From Eutreptiella sp. 'Long Island Sound 2002' (taxonomy: Eukaryota; Protista; Euglenida): DNA of 64,000 bases. The notes beneath the pieces were generated by a model. That model made no database searches and had not been told where the DNA came from. It worked only from the letters and a program-made list of their open reading frames with translations. The DNA lies in NCBI GenBank assembly GCA_964036045.1, contig OZ038378.1, positions 173,724,001 through 173,788,000 on the forward strand, read 5' to 3'. Below are positions 2,163 through 62,703 of the stretch, in pieces (position 1 is the first letter of the stretch; every line of letters starts with the position of its first letter). The position numbers and the translations under genes are program-made.

Positions 2163-3329
2163 CCCCCCCCCCTTTGCGCAGGCAAGGCCTTGTCTAGGCA
2201 CAGCAACCCTATCTGGCCGTTGTTTTTTGGACCGCAGTTTGGGTGGTCCAAAATGCAAGAAGACATGTTTGTCAGTTGGCTGCAGTCGGAAGACGGAGCT
2301 GGTTAATGCCCCAATAAGTTGGTTCTGGTCATATCAACATTGTGCTTGCCGCTGCAAGTCAGTTCCATTTGTTTTGATGACATTTTCGGCTGTGGGTAAT
2401 TTTGCTGGAACCGGCTGTTGCATACATCCGATTCAGCACTGGTTACCATGTGCCTACCACCATAATGAAGATTGTGCACAATAGTAGATTGTATGGACAA
2501 AGCTGCCCGCTGTATTGGGGACTGGGACATGCGTTTGATGGCAAGCTCTACTTCACAAAGCATATTGTTGATGACGGTGTTGTCCCAAAGCACAAGAACG
2601 CCAAAGCCGCACCGAAGACTGCCCCCAAACGCAAGCAATTGTTTCAAATGAAGCGGTGGGACCGGCTTTTCTTCCACTGCTCCTGATGTACCTGGTCGCA
2701 GTCACTGGTCGGCCTGCGCTCTGTTGCAGTCTGACGTGACAGAGTCCCACGGCGTTCTTTGTTTCTCAAGTGAGAACCGCCCTCACTCCTGCCCAAGCTA
2801 CAGCCTTATCCAAGGTGCTGCACATTGACTTGCCAAAGTTCTGTCTTCAGATTGCAGACTTGGTGCGCAGATTGAAGATGGGGGCAAACTGCTTGGAGCT
2901 GTCTGTTCTGTGTGTAAGAGGGCATCAGCCCAAGCTGCACATGCGGGGCGTAAGCTGCGGGACATTGGGAACCACATCTAATCTGAAATCTTCAACCCCT
3001 TCCCCTGTCCCTTTGCGCTGGCACGGCCTTGTCTATGCACAGTGACCCCATTCTGACCGTTGTTTTTCTGACCGCAGACTTAGGGGCTACGAAAGCAAGA
3101 TGACAGATTTGTAAGCCTTTGGTGGCCGGAGGGAGAGGCTGGGTGATGCATGTGAAGAGTTGCTTCTGCTCACAACAACGTTGTGTGCGGAAGACTGCAA
3201 CCCTCTTCTAATTGGTGTGATGTGAATTTTCTTGTCTATGGTGTCCATGCGCAAGCAGAGCCTTGTCTAAGCACGGGATCCCCGTCTGACCCTCAACTTC
3301 CCTGTGTTAGACCGTACTTGCGCAAGAGG
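2163..3329 (+). mobile_element. Degenerate CCC-terminal TIR element with coding remnant
   Basis: Starts C10-TTTGCGCAGGC and ends ACTTGCGCAAGAGG (degenerate inverted match). Carries three copies of the subterminal motif GCCTTGTCTA.GCAC..(C)CC.TCTGACC (~2187, ~3026, ~3260), also present in the MITEs at 28813 and 47573. Remnant ORF 2402-2686 has CP..WGLGH....KLYFT. Confidence 0.5.
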
Positions 3330-3666
3330 ATGTGTGGGTCAGCCTGGACCAGCGCAGTGGCGAGTCTGGGATGGCACGCACAGGGACAGAGGGTGAGCAG
3401 GGAAGACTATTGCAGGCAGGTGCAATGTGACGCCTTGTGGCGAGCTGGAAGGCCTGCAGGCGTGGCAGAGCTCACTGCAGTCGATTGCATCAGATGTAGC
3501 TCTCAACGCACGTTTCACATTACAAATAAGGCATGCGTTAGCTTTGAAACTTGATATTGCGAAATCTCTGTTGAGTATTGATCGGTTGTGGGCGTTGCTC
3601 TGCTCCCCACAGCGCACACAGAAAGTGCGTGTCGATCATGCATATGTTCAGGAGGGCCCAGCTGAT

Positions 3667-3781
3667 GTGACCCTGTCAATGCACTCACACCGTGGGGGGA
3701 ACACTGTATTGATCTCTATATACATGCGATACCAGGATTGTTCCCGGGTGTTTGAGAAAGTCAGTCACAAACAAATTTGAC
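3667..3781 (+). repeat. 115-bp direct repeat, copy 1 (identical to 7163-7277)
   Basis: GTGACCCTGTCAATGC...CACAAACAAATTTGAC occurs identically on both sides of the YR retroelement. Confidence 0.95.
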
Positions 3782-3924
3782 TGTAGTTAGTATAGCGCAG
3801 CGGGGTAACGAAAGTTCTGCCACCGGGCCCCCAGCACCCCCCCCCCCTGTCCTGCTTCCCCTCCTCCCTCCTCCCCTCCTTAGCCTTTTTATAATTTAAA
3901 GGCGGGGGTACATCGGGTCATCCA

Positions 3925-5115
3925 ATGGGCTCGGCCAAAAATGATGGGGCTTGGGACTGGAGACGTCTAAAAGACGAGGACCCCGCGGCGAAGTCAACAG
4001 CATGGGCCCACCTGATTCAGACGCCCTGGATGGCCCGTATGATCCCGCTTCAGCATCGTACAGAGGTGCTGGTGGCGGGCGTGGCAGGATGGTCTCGGGA
4101 CGGAGTCAGCTGGAGTGCGGTGAAGCTGGCCAGGACCTTCCATGAGACGCTGGGGATCTCGTTTCAATCCCCTGATCCGCAGCGGTACGTCGACGCGCTG
4201 CTGTATGGGCTGACACTTGCCTGGGGAGTAGAGGTGACTGCGTTCAGCCTGTCTGCGGAAGAGGCGGCCGTCGGGTTCGCTGTCTGCGACTTATTCGCCA
4301 AGCCGCCTGGAAAATCGGCGAGCAGGAGAGGAGGAGTGGGGATCAAGGGTGAGAGACACTCTCAGGGGAAGAACGCAAAGCCCGAGACCAACAGTGGTAT
4401 GGCTCTGGACGAGGAGGCGGGCGCCGGAGCCGGTGAGCGCGAAGGAGGTGGGGGGCCGGCCGCGGCTGAGGAGGACGAGGAGGACGAACTGACGTACAAG
4501 GAGCCCAGCTTCAAAAATGCCAGGTGGATGAGAAAGAGGCCCGGGGCCCCGCGGTGGACGGTCAAACTGTGCCGCCTGGTTGAGAGGTTAATGGAGGCCG
4601 AGGAGTCTGAGACTGCGACAGAGGTGTCCACGATCATTGACGATGTCTGGCAATTGCTCCTTGATTGCGACAAGTCGGGTAAGGACGCGGTCAAGGCAAA
4701 AATAAAGGAGGTCAAAAGGAGGAACAAGAAGAAGGCCAAAAAACAGAGGCGAAAGGAGAAAAAGAAGGAGATGAAGGAGCGCCGATCATCTCGGAGGGGA
4801 AAAGGGAGGCGCAGGTCCTCCGACTCGGATTCGTCGTCCACGGACAGTAGCAGCGACAGTGCGTCCCATACATCATCCTCGGCAAGCTCCAGCTCATCGG
4901 GGCGCCACTCAAAGCGCAAAAGCAGAGGTGGCACGCAGGGGAGCACGAGTCAGCCGGAGTTCAAGTGGATAGACGGAAAGCGCCACTTCCGCAGCAAGAA
5001 AACAGGAGACTGGGTTAATTGCGAAAACCCTCCAAAAACGGCATGCCCGGAGTGTGGTGGCCACCATTGGTGGTTTGACAGGGAGAAGCACGGGTGTAAA
5101 GGCCGAAGGAAGTGA
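3925..5115 (+). CDS. Gag-like ORF1 of YR retrotransposon (K/R/S-rich linker, C-terminal zinc-knuckle-like motif)
   Basis: Open 396-aa ORF. C-terminal CPECGGHHWWFDREKHGC. Lies immediately upstream of the YR ORF and is preceded by a C/T-rich tract with AG (3836-3883), a possible trans-splice acceptor. Confidence 0.7.
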   Translation: MGSAKNDGAWDWRRLKDEDPAAKSTAWAHLIQTPWMARMIPLQHRTEVLVAGVAGWSRDGVSWSAVKLARTFHETLGISFQSPDPQRYVDALLYGLTLAWGVEVTAFSLSAEEAAVGFAVCDLFAKPPGKSASRRGGVGIKGERHSQGKNAKPETNSGMALDEEAGAGAGEREGGGGPAAAEEDEEDELTYKEPSFKNARWMRKRPGAPRWTVKLCRLVERLMEAEESETATEVSTIIDDVWQLLLDCDKSGKDAVKAKIKEVKRRNKKKAKKQRRKEKKKEMKERRSSRRGKGRRRSSDSDSSSTDSSSDSASHTSSSASSSSSGRHSKRKSRGGTQGSTSQPEFKWIDGKRHFRSKKTGDWVNCENPPKTACPECGGHHWWFDREKHGCKGRRK

Positions 5116-46663: not shown

Positions 46664-46688
46664 CTTTCTGAGTGTCTATTTTTTTTCG
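46664..46688 (+). other. Genomic copy of the euglenid spliced-leader exon fused to a 5' UTR
   Basis: CTTTCTGAGTGTCTATTTTTTTTCG equals nt 2-26 of the Euglena SL as I recall it (ACTTTCTGAGTGTCTATTTTTTTTCG). It is followed by GGTGCA.., not a GT donor, and lies 23 nt before an ATG. Confidence 0.9.
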
Positions 46689-55365: not shown

Positions 55366-57895
55366 TCAAGCAAAGAAGTGCCTCAAGCGAGAAGTGATTG
55401 CATGGAAAACACCCCCGTAGTGGGGCAATTGGCAAAATTGGCACACACGTTGTTGAACACTGCTCTGGGGTTCGGTTGGGTGGCACGTGCCACACACGCA
55501 CGCACACACAGTCCGGCTATCGTCAAATGACACCCTGATTTGACTCCTGTGTACGGCCACTTGGGTGTAGGGAGTCATTTTTGAGTCTTTATTGTCTATG
55601 TTTTTTGAGTTTGGTGAGGTTACCAATCAGTGTCTAAGACCAAGGTTTTGATGCAAGGTTTTGGTCCATGGCTGAACAGCTTTGTGGACAATGCCCTTAT
55701 AGGCCAGCTGGTCGTGAGATGTAGTGTGCTTGGTGAGGCCAAAACAAGTGGGTTGCTATAGGGGTTGCTAGAAGGTGGATGCAACACAAATACAAAACTA
55801 GCAACCACAAGCTGTTGCCACCCTCACACTTCGAGAGATGCAAAATATCTAAGGTCATTTTCCAATTATGGGGCAGGAAAAGCCACCTACAAAGCCGCTC
55901 GGAGGCAGAAATGACCAAATGACAGACTGCGCAGAAAACGCGCTATTGCGGTGACTTGCAGCACTAAACAACACCACACATGCACTAGCTGCACTATCTC
56001 TTGGTAGGAGAGGGGCATGTGTGACTTCTAATACGCCTATTCGGCATCCACCTCGCCAAAGAGGGCACCTAGGTCTTAACATACCGGACGACTTGCAACC
56101 CCGCCACTGGGGGCCTGTAGCTTGCCTATCTTGCAAAGGCGTTGTGCCAGCTCAACAAGCTGCACTCAGGGTTGTCTTTGTCTTGGTGTGATGTGTCGCC
56201 TCCAATCTACAACAGTCGTTTCTTCACTTGGAAGAACAAGACGGTGGTTTGTGGGTATTTTATCCGCCGTGCGCGGTTGCGTACCCATGATTTTATCCAC
56301 AAAAGCACTTGGTCTTTTACTTTGCACCAGGGATGGATATCATTGGGGGACTGGGTCCGGCCCGGACTCCGCCCCCCTTGGTTCCAAAAAAGGTCACGAT
56401 ATCTAGTCACAAAAAAAAAGACCCAAAGCCGGCCATTTTGGGCAGCCCTCAACCCGTAGATGCACATGGGGAAGGGGGGGGGGGTGATGCAACAACACAC
56501 ATAACAGGCATAGAGCCCTATGGATGCAACATGGTCATTGTCATTCACTATCATCACTCAAAGTGACAATAGTGTCTTGCTCGCTGTAGCTACCCCTAGT
56601 TGACTTGTCTTTATCACTGCCACTATCGCTACCACTGCCACTATCGCTGCCACTGCCACTAGAAAGAAAAAGGCCTGCAACAACAAAATGCACACACAGT
56701 GTACAAATACCAGTAGTCACAAGAAATTTGCAGTGCAAGTAGACACAGTCACGGTAGATTTGCAGTCCGGGCAGGCACAGGAGACATTTTACTGGAGACA
56801 ACTTTTTTGGTCACAATATTTTGGGGGTTTGCACTTTCCCACTATGGCCCTTTATATTTTTCTTGACTAGTCACAAAAAATCCCCCCCCCCCCGGGACCT
56901 GGACCCCCGAGTGGCACCAAAATTGTATCCATCGCTGCTTTGCACCCTCGGGAATTGGAGAGTGCCAAGCTCAACGCCCCTCGCTAGCATAAACCTTGTG
57001 TCCTCCTTTGGTAGCGAGCTTGGCAATTGGCTCTAAGGATGGTCTCTACTTTGGGGATGGTCTTCACTACTTTCCCCTATCAAAGTCGATTGCAAGTGCC
57101 CAGTGCTCGGATCGGCAATAGGAGGGCATTCCACCGCCTTCACCTCCCGCGACAAGGCCTAGATTTTGTTTGCACATGGTTGTGGGAAAAGCTCCCAATT
57201 CGGGAGAGCCTCCATCGTATTTTTCTAGGGTGCCGATCAGCTACCCGTTTTGCACGGCCCGCGTGGATGTGTATCACTGCCTCAAGGCCTACCCTCAATT
57301 GTAGTGTACTTTTCCACCTATGCAGACCGCACCGGGGCATGTGCACTTCAATCGCATATGCATGGATTCCCCCCTGCTCTGCCTCACCATAGCGCCTAGG
57401 GTCCTACTGTGGAACCGGGGTTGTGGGGCCTGTTCCCAACCCCTTCGGGTGCTGCCAATCGTCTTGTGATGAGGTAGGTCAAAAGAGGGCACGGGCTGAG
57501 GCCTACAGCGCACAAGCAAAGCCTGATATGGTTCATGTGTCCAAGGTTTACACCAACGGTTCATCTGCGGAGGAGGCACCACACCGTGGTTTTGCTAGGT
57601 ATGGTGTGCAGTTGGTTTGACCCAGAAACATTTCCTCACTGGCCCCCCGCCCCCCCCCCCCCCTGCCATGAACGACGCAAAACCTAGTTACTTAGGCGTC
57701 ACAAGTTGCCCACCCTCTAGGACCCCGTATACGCGCGATTTGACAATATTCTACATTTCTACTTTGAGTATGTTATTTGACGTATGTGACCAAAGTTGTT
57801 GGCAGAGCTGTGTGACACCCGTTGAAATACGTGTTGATGTGTTAGCCTTGTGTATCCCCGTCTTCTAGTGTGCTGTATTTTACGTTTTTCTGAAG

Positions 57896-58196
57896 CTGGC
57901 CGAAATTTCGGCCAGGTTTTGGGTAACATTGCAAACAACTATGTGTATATGCAGTTTTTGACCCTTCTGGCCGAAATTTCGGCCAGCTTTTTGGTTTCTT
58001 GGTGAATAGGCATGATTATTTTCATTTTTCTTAGGGCTGGCCGAAATTTCGGCCAGCTTTTTGGTTTGTTCACTATTCAAGCACTTATATTCTGGTTTTT
58101 GGGTGGGCTGGCCGAAATTTCGGCCAGCTTTTCCTATTTTTGAACATGTAAGCAATTATTTCCCCTTTGAACACACCTGGCCGAAATTTCGGCCAG
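57896..58196. repeat. Array of five identical 20-bp palindromes with 49-51-bp distinct spacers
   Basis: CTGGCCGAAATTTCGGCCAG at 57896, 57967, 58037, 58108 and 58177 (periods 71, 70, 71, 69). Confidence 0.97.
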
Positions 58197-58267
58197 CTTG
58201 CAATTGTCGTTGTTCATGAGTATTACACCATACACTCCTACATAACTGTTTTCTTGTCTCAGCATTA

Positions 58268-60334
58268 ATGTCTTCTGCTATTACTGTCAATGTTGTACAT
58301 GCTGCAGTTACTGGTGCTTTTGCTACTACAGCCAAAGGGCTGTTGCGAAATGCATTACGTGGTGGGACTCTGCAAAAGCTTTTGCAATTCTGCCTCTTGT
58401 TGCGGAAGAATCGCAGGAGCCGGCACTCCCTGACACAGTTGAAGGCCGCCGCCACCGAGAAGAAGCCCCCACGATGGTACATGACATTTTTGTCACAGTT
58501 CCATGCCCTATACTGCCTGCTGCGCCGTATGGCCCTCCCATACTCTAACTGTGGGTCTGGTTACAACTGGGGTATTATGTCCTGCCGCCAACGCCGTAAG
58601 GTAGGAGTCCTTGGTCAGTGTAACACTAAGCAGGAGTCCATTCACCATCGTGCTGGACTAGCAGCACACAACTTGTGGAACACCATGCACCGTAGGCAAG
58701 TTTGTATATGGTTTGATAACCTGAGGCGTTACAGGTCGGGAGCTGATCCCCATTCACCCGACTTAACCCTAAACTGTACAGCTGTTGCTGTTTTGCACAC
58801 TACTGCCCTACCTGCATACCGGGGTCTGCCGGAGCTGGCCGAAATTGAGGCCAGGGTACCAAAGGTTGCTGATGACATCTTTCGCTCACATAGAGCATTG
58901 TTTGATCGTATTGATGTTGCCAACCAAGGTATTCAGAGAGTTTGGGTTCGTGCTCCTTTGGATATTGCCAGAAAAGATGTTCGTTCCCTCAACTGGAGAC
59001 CCTTTTTCCTGTCTGAGCTCCGCTCCGGCACACACAAAGAGCTTTTGCAACTCGTGGTTGATTTGTCATGTGTGGAACACCGCACCAGACACTGTGTTCC
59101 GCTGCTTGTGGACATGAAAATACACTTTGCCCTACTTAAGCTGTGTTATGGTGCTGCTTATGTTCCCTGGAATGTACCACAATTACTGTTGGGTTTTCCT
59201 TTGGTGTACGGAGTATGGCATAGCTATAAGTATTGCGTTGAATTGATCTACAGGGCGTTCCTGCCGTTCATTAAGTTTTTGGAGCAGGGGAACAGCCTTC
59301 AGGTTGGGTCTATCCTCCCTCGCAAGGTCAAGGTCATCCATATGGAGAAGACGTTGCTTGGACTCATGCTAGCCACATCGTCCAATAGAGGCAGACTAGA
59401 TGAGCGCGTCACTTCCCTGCTCAATAGCCAGCGGGACTTGACACCCATTCAACGCAAGGGTTTGCGTATGTTATTAGCCCTTAAGGCTTTGCTGTACACA
59501 TACTGTCCAGCTGCTTTCAGCATTGGGACTTTGGTTCGTGAGTGCAACTGGGAGGGACGGGGGGCAGGTTCCGGTATTGTAGCTAAGCAGGCACTTGAGA
59601 TGTCCCTACTGCTCATGCTGAACATCCTAAAGCCCGAGGAACAGTTAACCACGGAGTATGTGAAAACCACCGCTGTTGCTCTTTTGTTTTGGAGTCATTG
59701 GCATTCCGCTTCCCTAGGGTGTATCCACTCTGAGGAGCTGGGTGAGGCACTTTTGAGTCGGTTCTCAGCCCACTGTCGCCGCAACACTGCATGTACTAGT
59801 GTCCAACAGTCGTCTGATTTATTTCTGACACTTCCCCCTGTCCAACCCGGAGAGAAAGTTTTGCGTGGTGTGCTGACTGAGAGATCCGTGGCAATGTTCT
59901 CTGCCAATCTTAAACAATTCATCTTGACAGCCCATACACAGAGCCTGCCCATTTGTGTTCCCGTTCCGGACTATAAAGTTGAGGTGAGAAGACTGGATGC
60001 AGTTGAGGATTTGACGTTCCCCGGTACCATGTCTAGGACACGAATCACCACAGACCGTTTAAAAGTGGTTCTGTTGCATGCAATGCAAAATCTGGTTGCG
60101 CGTACCAGGGTTCCTGAGGGTGTTGAGGATTTTTTACAGACAAATGCACCTGCCCGCACTGCTGCCGAGCAAGGGGTGTTGCGTACTGCACATGCTTCTA
60201 TTCGCGCTGCCAACCGTGCACCGCCTGCTGCTCTGCTCCTGGTGGAATTGCCTTGCCCCCAAAGCCACCCCCGAAGCCCCGAGCCTGGTTGCGCAGCTGC
60301 TTTTGTCCGGTGTGCCTGTGTTCATTGCGGGTGA
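58268..60334 (+). CDS. 688-aa putative DDE transposase (DUF6589/Academ-like, insertion-domain type)
   Basis: Candidate triad WFDN (D, 58715), VDMKIH (D, 59111) and GEALLS (E, 59744), with a GVWH motif (59210-59221) in the position of the C/DxxH signature. DNL...NCTAVAV resembles the DN...T-A-x-V motif recalled for DUF6589-type proteins. Long, intronless, AT3-leaning, unlike host genes. Confidence 0.6.
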   Translation: MSSAITVNVVHAAVTGAFATTAKGLLRNALRGGTLQKLLQFCLLLRKNRRSRHSLTQLKAAATEKKPPRWYMTFLSQFHALYCLLRRMALPYSNCGSGYNWGIMSCRQRRKVGVLGQCNTKQESIHHRAGLAAHNLWNTMHRRQVCIWFDNLRRYRSGADPHSPDLTLNCTAVAVLHTTALPAYRGLPELAEIEARVPKVADDIFRSHRALFDRIDVANQGIQRVWVRAPLDIARKDVRSLNWRPFFLSELRSGTHKELLQLVVDLSCVEHRTRHCVPLLVDMKIHFALLKLCYGAAYVPWNVPQLLLGFPLVYGVWHSYKYCVELIYRAFLPFIKFLEQGNSLQVGSILPRKVKVIHMEKTLLGLMLATSSNRGRLDERVTSLLNSQRDLTPIQRKGLRMLLALKALLYTYCPAAFSIGTLVRECNWEGRGAGSGIVAKQALEMSLLLMLNILKPEEQLTTEYVKTTAVALLFWSHWHSASLGCIHSEELGEALLSRFSAHCRRNTACTSVQQSSDLFLTLPPVQPGEKVLRGVLTERSVAMFSANLKQFILTAHTQSLPICVPVPDYKVEVRRLDAVEDLTFPGTMSRTRITTDRLKVVLLHAMQNLVARTRVPEGVEDFLQTNAPARTAAEQGVLRTAHASIRAANRAPPAALLLVELPCPQSHPRSPEPGCAAAFVRCACVHCG

Positions 60335-61166
60335 GTCTGCTGATGTGAAAGCCACTGTTGCTGCTTTGAAGGCCACTGTGGCTGAGGATATGTATCAGTG
60401 TGATGTTGCACTTTACAATTTGTCCAGCAAGACCCCGCTGTACACTTCTACGTCCCATCTGGTTTCCATTTGTTCTGCCACTGCCTTTGATAACAGGCTT
60501 CCCCGTTACGTGGCTTTTACTGAAGGACCCATGTCGTCTGTGATGCCTGTTGAAATATTCTCATTTCTTTTGAGCCTGGTTCCGGTCCCAGAACGGGCAG
60601 GCAACTGGTTTTTGCTGGGGACTCTGTCTGTGTATTTTGCAAGCATGATGTCTACCAGGTTTTCCAAGGACTGTAATGTTGTGTGTGCCCTTTTGGGTGA
60701 GGAGACTGTTGTGCCCGATGACTTTGTTCAGCTCATCAGAGCAGGTATCACCAACGCCGACACGTGCCCCCCCAAGTCATGGGAGGATGTGTACCACGAC
60801 TTGGGGGCAGGTTTTCCTGTGGATTGTTCTGGGGTTAGGTATGTAGATGAGGATCCTGAGGAGCAAGATGGGGAGGCAGAGTCGCAACCAGAGACACAGA
60901 CTCCAAAGAAGAAACCCAAAACTGCCCCTGCCCCCTCACCCAGTGGCACGCAGTGCGCTCAGGCCACCCCAGCTTCCTCCTCAGGCACTGTTGCCCCTAC
61001 TGGCAAAGGTATGAATACTTTTGTGAATCATTTTTCACCATCCCAGGGTGGAAACACACAGTCACAGAACTCTGCCACTGCCAAGTCTGGTGCTGCAGCC
61101 CCTGCCAAGCAGCCTGCTAACACAGGTGCTAAGAAGCCCCGTGCATCTGGTCTGCGCAAGCGCTAA
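60078..61166 (+). CDS. Overlapping downstream ORF (probable frameshifted C-terminal part or second protein of the element)
   Basis: 362-aa open frame, protein-like from ~60255. Acidic EDPEEQDGE then a P/T/S/A-rich tail with basic NLS-like PKKKPK and KKPR..RKR. Stops 40 bp before the right-hand palindrome. Confidence 0.55.
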   Translation: MQCKIWLRVPGFLRVLRIFYRQMHLPALLPSKGCCVLHMLLFALPTVHRLLLCSWWNCLAPKATPEAPSLVAQLLLSGVPVFIAGESADVKATVAALKATVAEDMYQCDVALYNLSSKTPLYTSTSHLVSICSATAFDNRLPRYVAFTEGPMSSVMPVEIFSFLLSLVPVPERAGNWFLLGTLSVYFASMMSTRFSKDCNVVCALLGEETVVPDDFVQLIRAGITNADTCPPKSWEDVYHDLGAGFPVDCSGVRYVDEDPEEQDGEAESQPETQTPKKKPKTAPAPSPSGTQCAQATPASSSGTVAPTGKGMNTFVNHFSPSQGGNTQSQNSATAKSGAAAPAKQPANTGAKKPRASGLRKR

Positions 61167-61205
61167 TGCCAGTCCTGCTGCTTATATTGCCTGTCAGCAT
61201 GAAGT

Positions 61206-61528
61206 CTGGCCGAAATTTCGGCCAGCATGCAGTCCTCAGCCTCTTCGGCCTTTTATTATTGTGTTTCCCCATAGGCACTGCAAAAGTCTGCTTTGATTCG
61301 TCAGGTGGCAAGTATTTGCTTGTAATTGAGTATATTATGTTGCACACCCTGTTCAAATGTCACTGCTCCTGTGTTCCTTGCTCATGTCTACTGTCTTAGG
61401 TACCCATTTCAGTGATCATATTCGGAGTTTCGATGGACCTGGCCGAAATTTCGGCCAGCTTAGGCCTGTCTGTCAAATAGGACCATGTGTTTGGACTTTT
61501 TCGAAGAGCTGGCCGAAATTTCGGCCAG
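61206..61528. repeat. Three further copies of the 20-bp palindrome downstream of the ORFs
   Basis: Exact copies at 61206, 61439 and 61509; the last two are again 70 bp apart. Confidence 0.97.
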
Positions 61529-62606
61529 GTTGGTTAAAATAGGAAATACAAGTACATGCTTTGGGATAGTTTTTTGTGTGCTTCAATGAAAGGTATGTTT
61601 GGGGTTCCCTCATCTGTGGTGTATAGGGGGGTTCTGTGATCAACCTCGAACAAAGGGGAGAGAAAAATAGGCAGCCCCCCCCCCCCCCCCCACACACACT
61701 GGAATGCAGTGGTCTAAATGTAAAACAACACTATATTTTGGTGATTGAATGTCTTTATTTTGAAAATCTGTGTGTTTCCAGAAATGCAAATAATGGCATA
61801 TATTTGAAATACACACCTTGTTTTTGCATGTTGCCACCAGGGGGGTTTGGGTACCCAAAAAATAACACCCCTTTTCACATACTTTCCCCCTCATTACAAC
61901 ATGGACTTCCGTGGGCCATAGCGCCAGGTGGGGGGTGGGCAACTTGTGACGCCTAAGAGTTAGAAGGTGGAAACACGAACGAACCATACTTGCTGTCTGT
62001 CACAAGGCGCACTGGTTGAGAAACTTGAAGCACCTCTGCAAGCCATGAGTTCTGCCTGGTTATTACTTGATCCAGGACACCACCGGGTGCTGCATCCTTG
62101 TGCTATGGTTGTGGGCTCAAGGCCCCCGTAGAGAGCTCCACCTACCGATGGCGGACTTAAGCTGCGGTCCGGATGTCTGAGTCGCTGCGGGCTTTGATAC
62201 CCCTAGCACCTAGTCCAGCTAGGCAGGCTGGACTATCAATCCTGACCTTGCCCGGGGAGGCTGTCGGCAGCCGGGGATGCATGGGCGGGCAGTGGGTGAG
62301 GTGGCAGGGCACACGGTCATGCATGTGTGTCTTGGTGCTCCATGGGTGGGAACCAAGGGCAGGAGCCGTGGTTTCGTTGACGGTTGATGGCTATTAATGT
62401 CCTGGCCGCTCTTGCGACGGGGGGGTTAGGGGTTAGCGGGTTAGAGCCGTGGTTTCGTTGACGGCACGCTGTCTATATGGAGATTGTAGACCCCAGCAGG
62501 GTTGGCCTCTGTTGGGCGTTGGAACACGGAACACATGGTTATCTGCAGGTGGTAGGATGTAGGAATGTTGAACCTCGCAGTTTGCACATGAGTGAATGAT
62601 GGCCTT

Positions 62607-62607
<1 letters not shown>

Positions 62608-62697
<90 letters not shown>

Positions 62698-62703
62698 ACA
62701 CAC
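62608..62703. repeat. (CA)n microsatellite
   Basis: Nearly pure CA run. Confidence 0.98.

Follow-up and report, generated by a model that had tools for sequence, protein, structure and literature searches.

The window analysed here is a 64,000-nucleotide stretch of DNA from the euglenid Eutreptiella sp. 'Long Island Sound 2002' (assembly GCA_964036045.1, contig OZ038378.1, positions 173,724,001 to 173,788,000 of the forward strand), and our subject is a transposable element near its right end. A 20-bp palindrome, CTGGCCGAAATTTCGGCCAG, occurs there in eight exact copies, five to the left of a coding region (starting at 57896, 57967, 58037, 58108 and 58177) and three to the right. No other exact copy is present in the 64 kb, and none was expected from 100 dinucleotide-preserving shuffles, confirming the count given in a preliminary description of the locus made from its sequence. 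That description had taken the locus for a mobile element encoding a DDE-like protein, with ends defined by palindrome arrays and a possible relationship to Academ and DUF6589 transposases. The observation proved to be real but mis-bounded, and the interpretation was right about a mobile DDE element and wrong about its ends and about Academ. We consider with good confidence that positions 57691-61957 are a non-autonomous, internally deleted 4267-bp copy of a 6.5-kb cut-and-paste DNA transposon. Note that this confidence applies to the explanation as a whole, that is, to the deleted copy, the family to which it belongs and the role proposed below for the palindromes.

The element is bounded by perfect 25-bp terminal inverted repeats (TIRs) and a 5-bp target-site duplication (TSD), as shown in Table 1, although no convincing TIRs or TSD had been identified earlier. 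Both fall outside the coordinates that had been flagged (57896-61528), the TIRs lying 205 bp (left) and 405 bp (right) beyond the palindrome arrays. The 2.28-Gb assembly containing the window, to which all genome-wide searches reported here refer, holds 804 forward and 807 reverse matches to the 25-bp TIR at up to two mismatches, and the reversed control gave 0. Perfect 5-bp direct duplications, each of a different sequence, flank all 17 TIR-bounded copies that were fetched, and homology among the copies extends to the TIRs and ends there in every one of the 17. The alignment of genomic copies, which had been proposed as a way of fixing the termini, thus defined the 25-bp TIRs and a TSD length of 5 bp. 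Furthermore, about half of the 38 TIR pairs that were paired by hand among the genome matches listed span ~6.5 kb, and family copies are 94-98.8% identical. The family, whose termini read CTTAGGC, is a young, high-copy cut-and-paste TIR transposon with a 5-bp TSD and ~800 ends per strand in the genome. The locus had rightly been called mobile. The earlier proposal of an element without TIRs, whose ends are palindrome arrays acting as both direct and inverted repeats, drew on the position of the palindromes, five of which precede and three of which follow the coding region. However, the ends are set by the TIRs and TSD outside the arrays, which refutes the proposal, and full-length copies have five further palindromes in the middle of the element. 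We therefore give it virtually no credence.

Full-length copies are ~6.52 kb long and contain two genes and 13 palindromes. In the copy L003, the order is left TIR, ~205 bp, five palindromes, gene 1, three palindromes, gene 2, three palindromes, ~400 bp and right TIR. The second and third introns of gene 2 listed for L003 in Table 1 (4139-4228 and 4530-4657) hold one palindrome each, and all 13 sites are non-coding, being placed upstream of gene 1, between the genes, in the two introns and downstream of gene 2. A blastn comparison with another full-length copy, L005, aligned positions 1-2595 of the window element with L005 1-2583, and positions 2596-4267 with L005 4847-6518, on either side of a 2263-bp internal deletion. 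The deletion took the C-terminal tail of the transposase and three intergenic palindromes, together with the front part of gene 2, namely its first exons, the two introns that hold palindromes and the beginning of its last exon. Five of the 13 family palindromes were lost in this way, which explains the five-plus-three pattern of the window copy, whose right three correspond to sites 5767, 6000 and 6070 of a full-length copy.

Table 1. Positions of the features of the window element and of the genes of the full-length copy L003 (window numbering unless L003 is given)
Feature	Position	Strand	Remarks
Left TSD, AGTTA	57686..57690	.	Identical to 61958-61962
Left TIR, 25 bp, starting CTTAGGCG	57691..57715	+	100% complementary to 61933-61957
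5' array, five exact palindromes	57896..58196	.	Spacing 69-71 bp; upstream of the transposase gene; same five in full-length copies
Transposase open reading frame, 688 aa	58268..60334	+	Colinearity with the intact 736-aa gene ends at about codon 651
D150, predicted first catalytic Asp	58715..58717	+	WFDN motif, beta1, strand 145-154; invariant in alignment A2
Degenerate palindrome, 2 mismatches	58835..58854	.	Inside the transposase coding region
D282, predicted second catalytic Asp	59111..59113	+	LLVDxN motif, after beta4 (strand 279-281); invariant in A2, nearly invariant in alignment A3
E493, predicted catalytic Glu	59744..59746	+	EExxEAxLSR motif, helix 490-505; invariant in A2
Junction of the 2263-bp internal deletion	60285..60286	.	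From blastn against L005; microhomology at most 0-2 bp
Gene 2 remnant, about the last 293 codons of the last exon	60286..61166	+	No start codon; out of frame with the transposase open reading frame
Three exact palindromes	61206..61528 (61206, 61439, 61509)	.	Downstream of gene 2
Right TIR, 25 bp	61933..61957	-	Inverted pair with the left TIR from a repeat scan
Right TSD, AGTTA	61958..61962	.	Identical to the left TSD
Gene 1 (transposase, 736 aa)	L003 778-2988		
Gene 2	L003 start ~3329, stop 5946		GT-AG introns 3723-3809, 4139-4228 and 4530-4657

In addition to the large deletion, a 7-bp deletion within a GCT run shifts the transposase frame near codon 652. The 688-aa open reading frame (ORF), which exists where it was first placed, consists of residues 1-651 of the 736-aa protein followed by 21 frameshifted residues and 16 out-of-frame gene-2 codons; a 362-aa ORF that overlaps it in a different frame (60078-61166) is true gene-2 sequence only from 60286 onward. 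What had been taken for an intact, intronless coding region of 2.9 kb is two ORFs in different frames, made by the 2263-bp and 7-bp deletions in a derivative of a family whose gene 2 has GT-AG introns. The deletion junction of the window copy was found in no other copy among 40 scored of 962 first-look candidates; the other short copies (1.3-4.6 kb) each differ in their breakpoints, and public gene calls include chimeric gene 1-gene 2 proteins that derive from other deletions of this kind (P0008, P0012 and P0199). The object in the window is a dead-ended, internally deleted member of a two-gene DDE transposon family that is unclassified. Copies of the family would transpose by excision and reinsertion with a 5-bp staggered cut of the target, and the unique internal deletions, including that of the window copy, may arise from interrupted repair of the excision gap. 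A further copy, L041 (G000 C1:100101952-100106400), is 4049 bp long and has a perfect TSD and an interior that is both rearranged and deleted, its blocks corresponding to reference positions 6518-3775, 1386-347 and 371-1.

The nature of the gene 1 product was examined by structure prediction. AlphaFold with an 11-sequence alignment gave a predicted local distance difference test (pLDDT) value of 32.5 and was unusable; an alignment of 99 sequences was used instead, and the resulting AlphaFold2 model of window residues 1-640 had a pLDDT of 94.1 and a predicted template modelling score of 0.89. When this model was compared with the PDB by Foldseek, the top 11 rows were Hermes and P-element transposases (best match Hermes, E 1.9e-3, probability 0.97). 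VIA-align likewise ranked the P element first (Z 10.2 over 284 residues, root-mean-square deviation 5.0 Å, model residues 103-523), followed by Hermes (Z 9.9), HzTransib (8.3), ISCth4 (7.3) and RAG1 (7.0), and in a wide VIA-align search DDE transposases and integrases filled the top 29 rows. D150, D282 and E493 are invariant in 31 relatives and are all intact in the window copy, and in the model an all-helical insertion at about residues 349-487 precedes the helix of E493. According to the model, the three residues have the canonical DDE arrangement of the hAT/P/Transib class, and the ORF is predicted to be a DDE transposase whose RNase H-like core contains an all-helical insertion, a feature shared with P-element and hAT enzymes. 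The RNase H fold and the triad proposed earlier from the sequence (codons at 58715, 59111 and 59744) are both supported by these comparisons.

Despite the resemblance in fold, the element differs from the named families. P elements and hAT elements make 8-bp TSDs, and the 5-bp TSD of the present family therefore excludes both, as it does Academ. The P element, which has the closest fold, shares the DDE RNase H core and the large all-helical insertion before the catalytic Glu, and internally deleted non-autonomous copies occur in both; however, sequence identity is 8-9%, and Pfam searches detected neither a THAP domain nor a P-element family in the transposase. hAT elements, represented by the second-best match, Hermes, depend on several short subterminal repeats to which a multimeric transposase binds. 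Unlike the short repeats of hAT, the repeats found here are palindromes of 16-21 bp that also lie deep inside the element. hAT transposases also have a C-terminal dimerisation domain (PF05699) and a BED finger, neither of which was detected, there being no Pfam match at E≤10.

Membership of the Transib/RAG-like group would agree with the 5-bp TSD and the broad fold class, including the VIA-align matches to HzTransib and RAG1, but P element and Hermes match better than either. Moreover, the termini are CTTAGGC where a CAC-type heptamer is expected for Transib/RAG1 (textbook knowledge), and the 99-sequence profile gave no sequence match to the Transib/RAG1 chains in the PDB. We regard such a membership as very improbable. 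As for Academ, these elements are also eukaryotic DDE transposons, but the TSD is 3-4 bp in AcademX and 9-10 bp in AcademH, and a nuclease or helicase is encoded (PMC10045372). Neither gene of the present element gave a match to a helicase or nuclease family, and the earlier suggestion of an Academ relationship fails on this point as well as on TSD length.

The nearest named family is DUF6589. In a language-model search, 28 of the 30 named matches were DUF6589 (PF20231) clusters (0.91-0.92). Furthermore, a third and far more divergent lineage of the transposase family is present in the same genome (L029:886-1845 and L030; G000 C7, ~10.63 Mb and ~11.35 Mb), with 24% identity and an hhalign probability of 100% (E 3e-45 for L029), and the L029 ORF has DUF6589 as its sole Pfam match. 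This match of L029 (E 7.5e-4) covers the D232-H318 region and scores 18.7 bits against a gathering cut-off of 27 bits. Matches to the DUF6589 hidden Markov model in the genome were confined to the L029/L030 lineage and were all below the cut-off, and the window ORF, the intact ORF and 31 relatives gave no match. The suggestion of a DUF6589 relationship is thus weakly supported; no member tested reaches the cut-off, and the relationship is probably one of remote homology rather than membership.

The transposase family itself is large and has no name in Pfam, NCBIfam or the source records consulted. A profile search of 1.84 billion representatives returned 1226 proteins at E≤1e-3, 249 of them at E≤1e-30, and ten distant relatives that were looked up were all unnamed or 'hypothetical protein' entries on metagenome or transcript contigs of 2-6 kb. 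Sequence searches of Pfam, NCBIfam and the PDB with the transposase, both as a single sequence and as a profile, gave nothing, and 31 diverse family members had zero matches in Pfam. A word search recovered only close kin and a sister group at 37-56% identity; the same kind of protein search by word index with the 99-sequence profile found Euglena-like kin and no named protein. In a literature search, which did not cover Repbase, we found no paper that treats the family, its palindrome or similar DDE transposons of Euglena.

We turn to the palindromes. CTGGCCGAAATTTCGGCCAG has 6174 exact copies in the genome. In the window, the left five lie in units of ~70 bp that are only 60-82% alike, and the 20-bp core is identical throughout, as it is in all 13 sites of the full element. 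The sequence context that had been noted as common to the first and eighth copies is real, but it follows from the diverged repeat unit of ~70 bp in which each palindrome is embedded. The number of exact sites per full-length copy falls with copy age from 13 to 4, indicating that the palindromes are kept up in the active lineage alone. L034 (G000 C1:15668500-15675500) also contains 11 clustered exact palindromes; its DNA is only 77-81% identical to the terminal regions of the family, and it may be a rearranged or older subfamily using the same palindrome.

Related lineages have palindromes of their own. A sister family in the same genome, with 46% transposase identity, is 6.35 kb long, ends in CTTAGGCC, has the termini CTTAGGC as the window family does, and has TSDs of 5 bp (AGATG and TGTAG). 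The palindrome of the sister family, CTGGGCGAAATTTCGCCCAG, differs from that of the window family at the mirror positions 5 and 16. In its 5' array only the left half-site is kept, and in its 3' array only the right half-site, so that the conserved half is inverted between the two ends of the sister element. Note that these features were read from cleaner copies, one sister-family copy (L013) being too nested in other repeats. Beside that copy, at L013:8850-13150, lies a different transposon with a 976-aa ORF that has a weak MULE (PF10551) match and lies between arrays of subterminal repeats of the GCGTAAGTCGC type, which are inverted relative to each other.

Among more distant relatives, L014 (40% transposase identity to the window ORF) has six copies of GGTCCGATATCGGACC, and L036, from a sediment metagenome (~30%), has 11 copies of TTCGCTCCATGGAGCGAA with a 5' array phased at 69 bp. 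L035 (27%), a complete 6523-bp element with 21-bp TIRs of its own, has 11 copies of TGCGCGCC-n-AGGCGCGCA; no TSD was found for this metagenomic element, whose flanks mismatch, and a chimeric assembly may be the explanation. By tblastn, a conserved gene 2 can be recognised in both L035 and L036, at E values between 5e-8 and 2e-7. Since a private palindrome, gene 2 and phased arrays are found in distant lineages, they are features of the whole group.

Two explanations of the palindromes dispense with a protein that recognises them. In the first, they act as hairpins or cruciforms, either in RNA as processing, termination or splicing signals or in DNA as cruciforms. They are perfect palindromes that fold as 8-bp stems of -13.9 kcal/mol, all 13 sites lie in non-coding and probably transcribed DNA, and the change between the two families at mirror positions preserves self-complementarity. 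However, a dimeric binding protein would lead one to expect this last change just as much, and many array sites of the sister family and of L036 keep one half-site and no stem. The mirroring of the conserved half between the 5' and 3' arrays fits oriented protein binding, and from these sequence comparisons half-site conservation and mirrored orientation would favour such binding over a hairpin role. We consider hairpins or cruciforms unlikely.

The second explanation is that the palindromes are selfish mini-insertions or host marks in non-coding DNA, unrelated to transposition. The palindromes do keep out of coding sequence, and a single degenerate copy (58835-58854) is in frame within the transposase gene, where it encodes LAEIEA, a sequence missing from the protein of the sister family; this copy may be an old palindrome insertion that was absorbed into the coding sequence. 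On the other hand, each lineage has its own palindrome at comparable positions, and exact sites drop with copy age as described above. Furthermore, all 50 distinct sites listed for the genome lie in family copies, in eight element-like clusters. An origin as mini-insertions or host marks is highly improbable in our judgement.

Instead, we propose that the palindromes are putative sequence-specific sites for a dimeric protein encoded by the element, which would probably help to assemble or mark the element rather than be its cleaved ends. The candidate reader is either the product of gene 2 or the N-terminal domain of the transposase, which is helical and basic. Gene 2 has a motif, (W/F)V(L/I)(G/S)GQH..AA, that is conserved across lineages, and its GGQH..AA part presumably resembles the DGQHR/ParB-Srx signature. 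An exon-by-exon search of gene 2 gave no match to ParB, Myb or methyltransferase models; note that a ParB-like domain would span an intron. For the last exon of gene 2, a language-model search pointed to AAA/dynein-like proteins (0.83-0.87), a weak lead that we did not trust.

More tentatively, and with doubt prevailing over belief, the group may represent an as yet unnamed superfamily among the eukaryotic cut-and-paste transposons, with DUF6589 as a distant relative; an accessory protein, conserved and possibly ParB/Srx-like, would read a lineage-private, parS-like palindrome present ~13 times per element. If true, the element would have an addressing system of its own for end synapsis, self-marking or regulation, co-evolving with each lineage. 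A transposase accompanied by a conserved second gene and repeated short motifs is also found in PIF/Harbinger and CACTA/En-Spm elements and in algal transposons with ParB-like or methyltransferase genes, but their TSD lengths and transposase families differ from those of the present family. For the algal transposons, a role of the accessory proteins in binding and marking the element that encodes them has been proposed (PMC12477816).

Several points weigh against the explanation of the locus as a deleted copy of a DDE transposon with protein-read palindromes. For a transposase, binding sites that lie within introns or in intergenic DNA are unusual, and they could compete with the ends. The derivative L010 does not have the 5' array at all, and nothing shows later movement of L010. 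Searches of gene 2 against Pfam, NCBIfam and the PDB, exon by exon or with small profiles, gave no match. The clustering of the catalytic triad is deduced from the topology of the model and the alignment ranges. Finally, a search for flank paralogues yielded no clean empty site for the window insertion, the sole paralogue having 77-82% identity and lacking colinearity across the point of insertion.

With this explanation, a large unnamed family, for which public genomes and metagenomes supply at least 1226 cluster representatives, is given a reading as DDE transposases with defined ends and a TSD, and this reading probably extends to its distant relative DUF6589. The palindromes that change from lineage to lineage, together with the conserved gene 2, would provide a natural co-evolving protein-DNA recognition system in a eukaryotic transposon. 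In practical terms, the ~800 copies and ~6000 exact palindromes of the genome should be masked before such arrays are read as CRISPR-like or regulatory.

Some other features of the window were also observed. Positions 46666-46688 match exactly what we take to be the spliced leader of Euglena, with 0 matches expected by chance, and this supports the host being a euglenid. Just downstream of the element, at 62600-62700, lies a long (TG)n/(CA)n microsatellite, which is read as poly-Cys/Val and poly-Thr/His ORFs. Long poly-C tracts are present at 57643-57668, just outside the left end of the element, and at 61675-61692, inside its right part; similar C/G tracts are common in repeats of the same genome.

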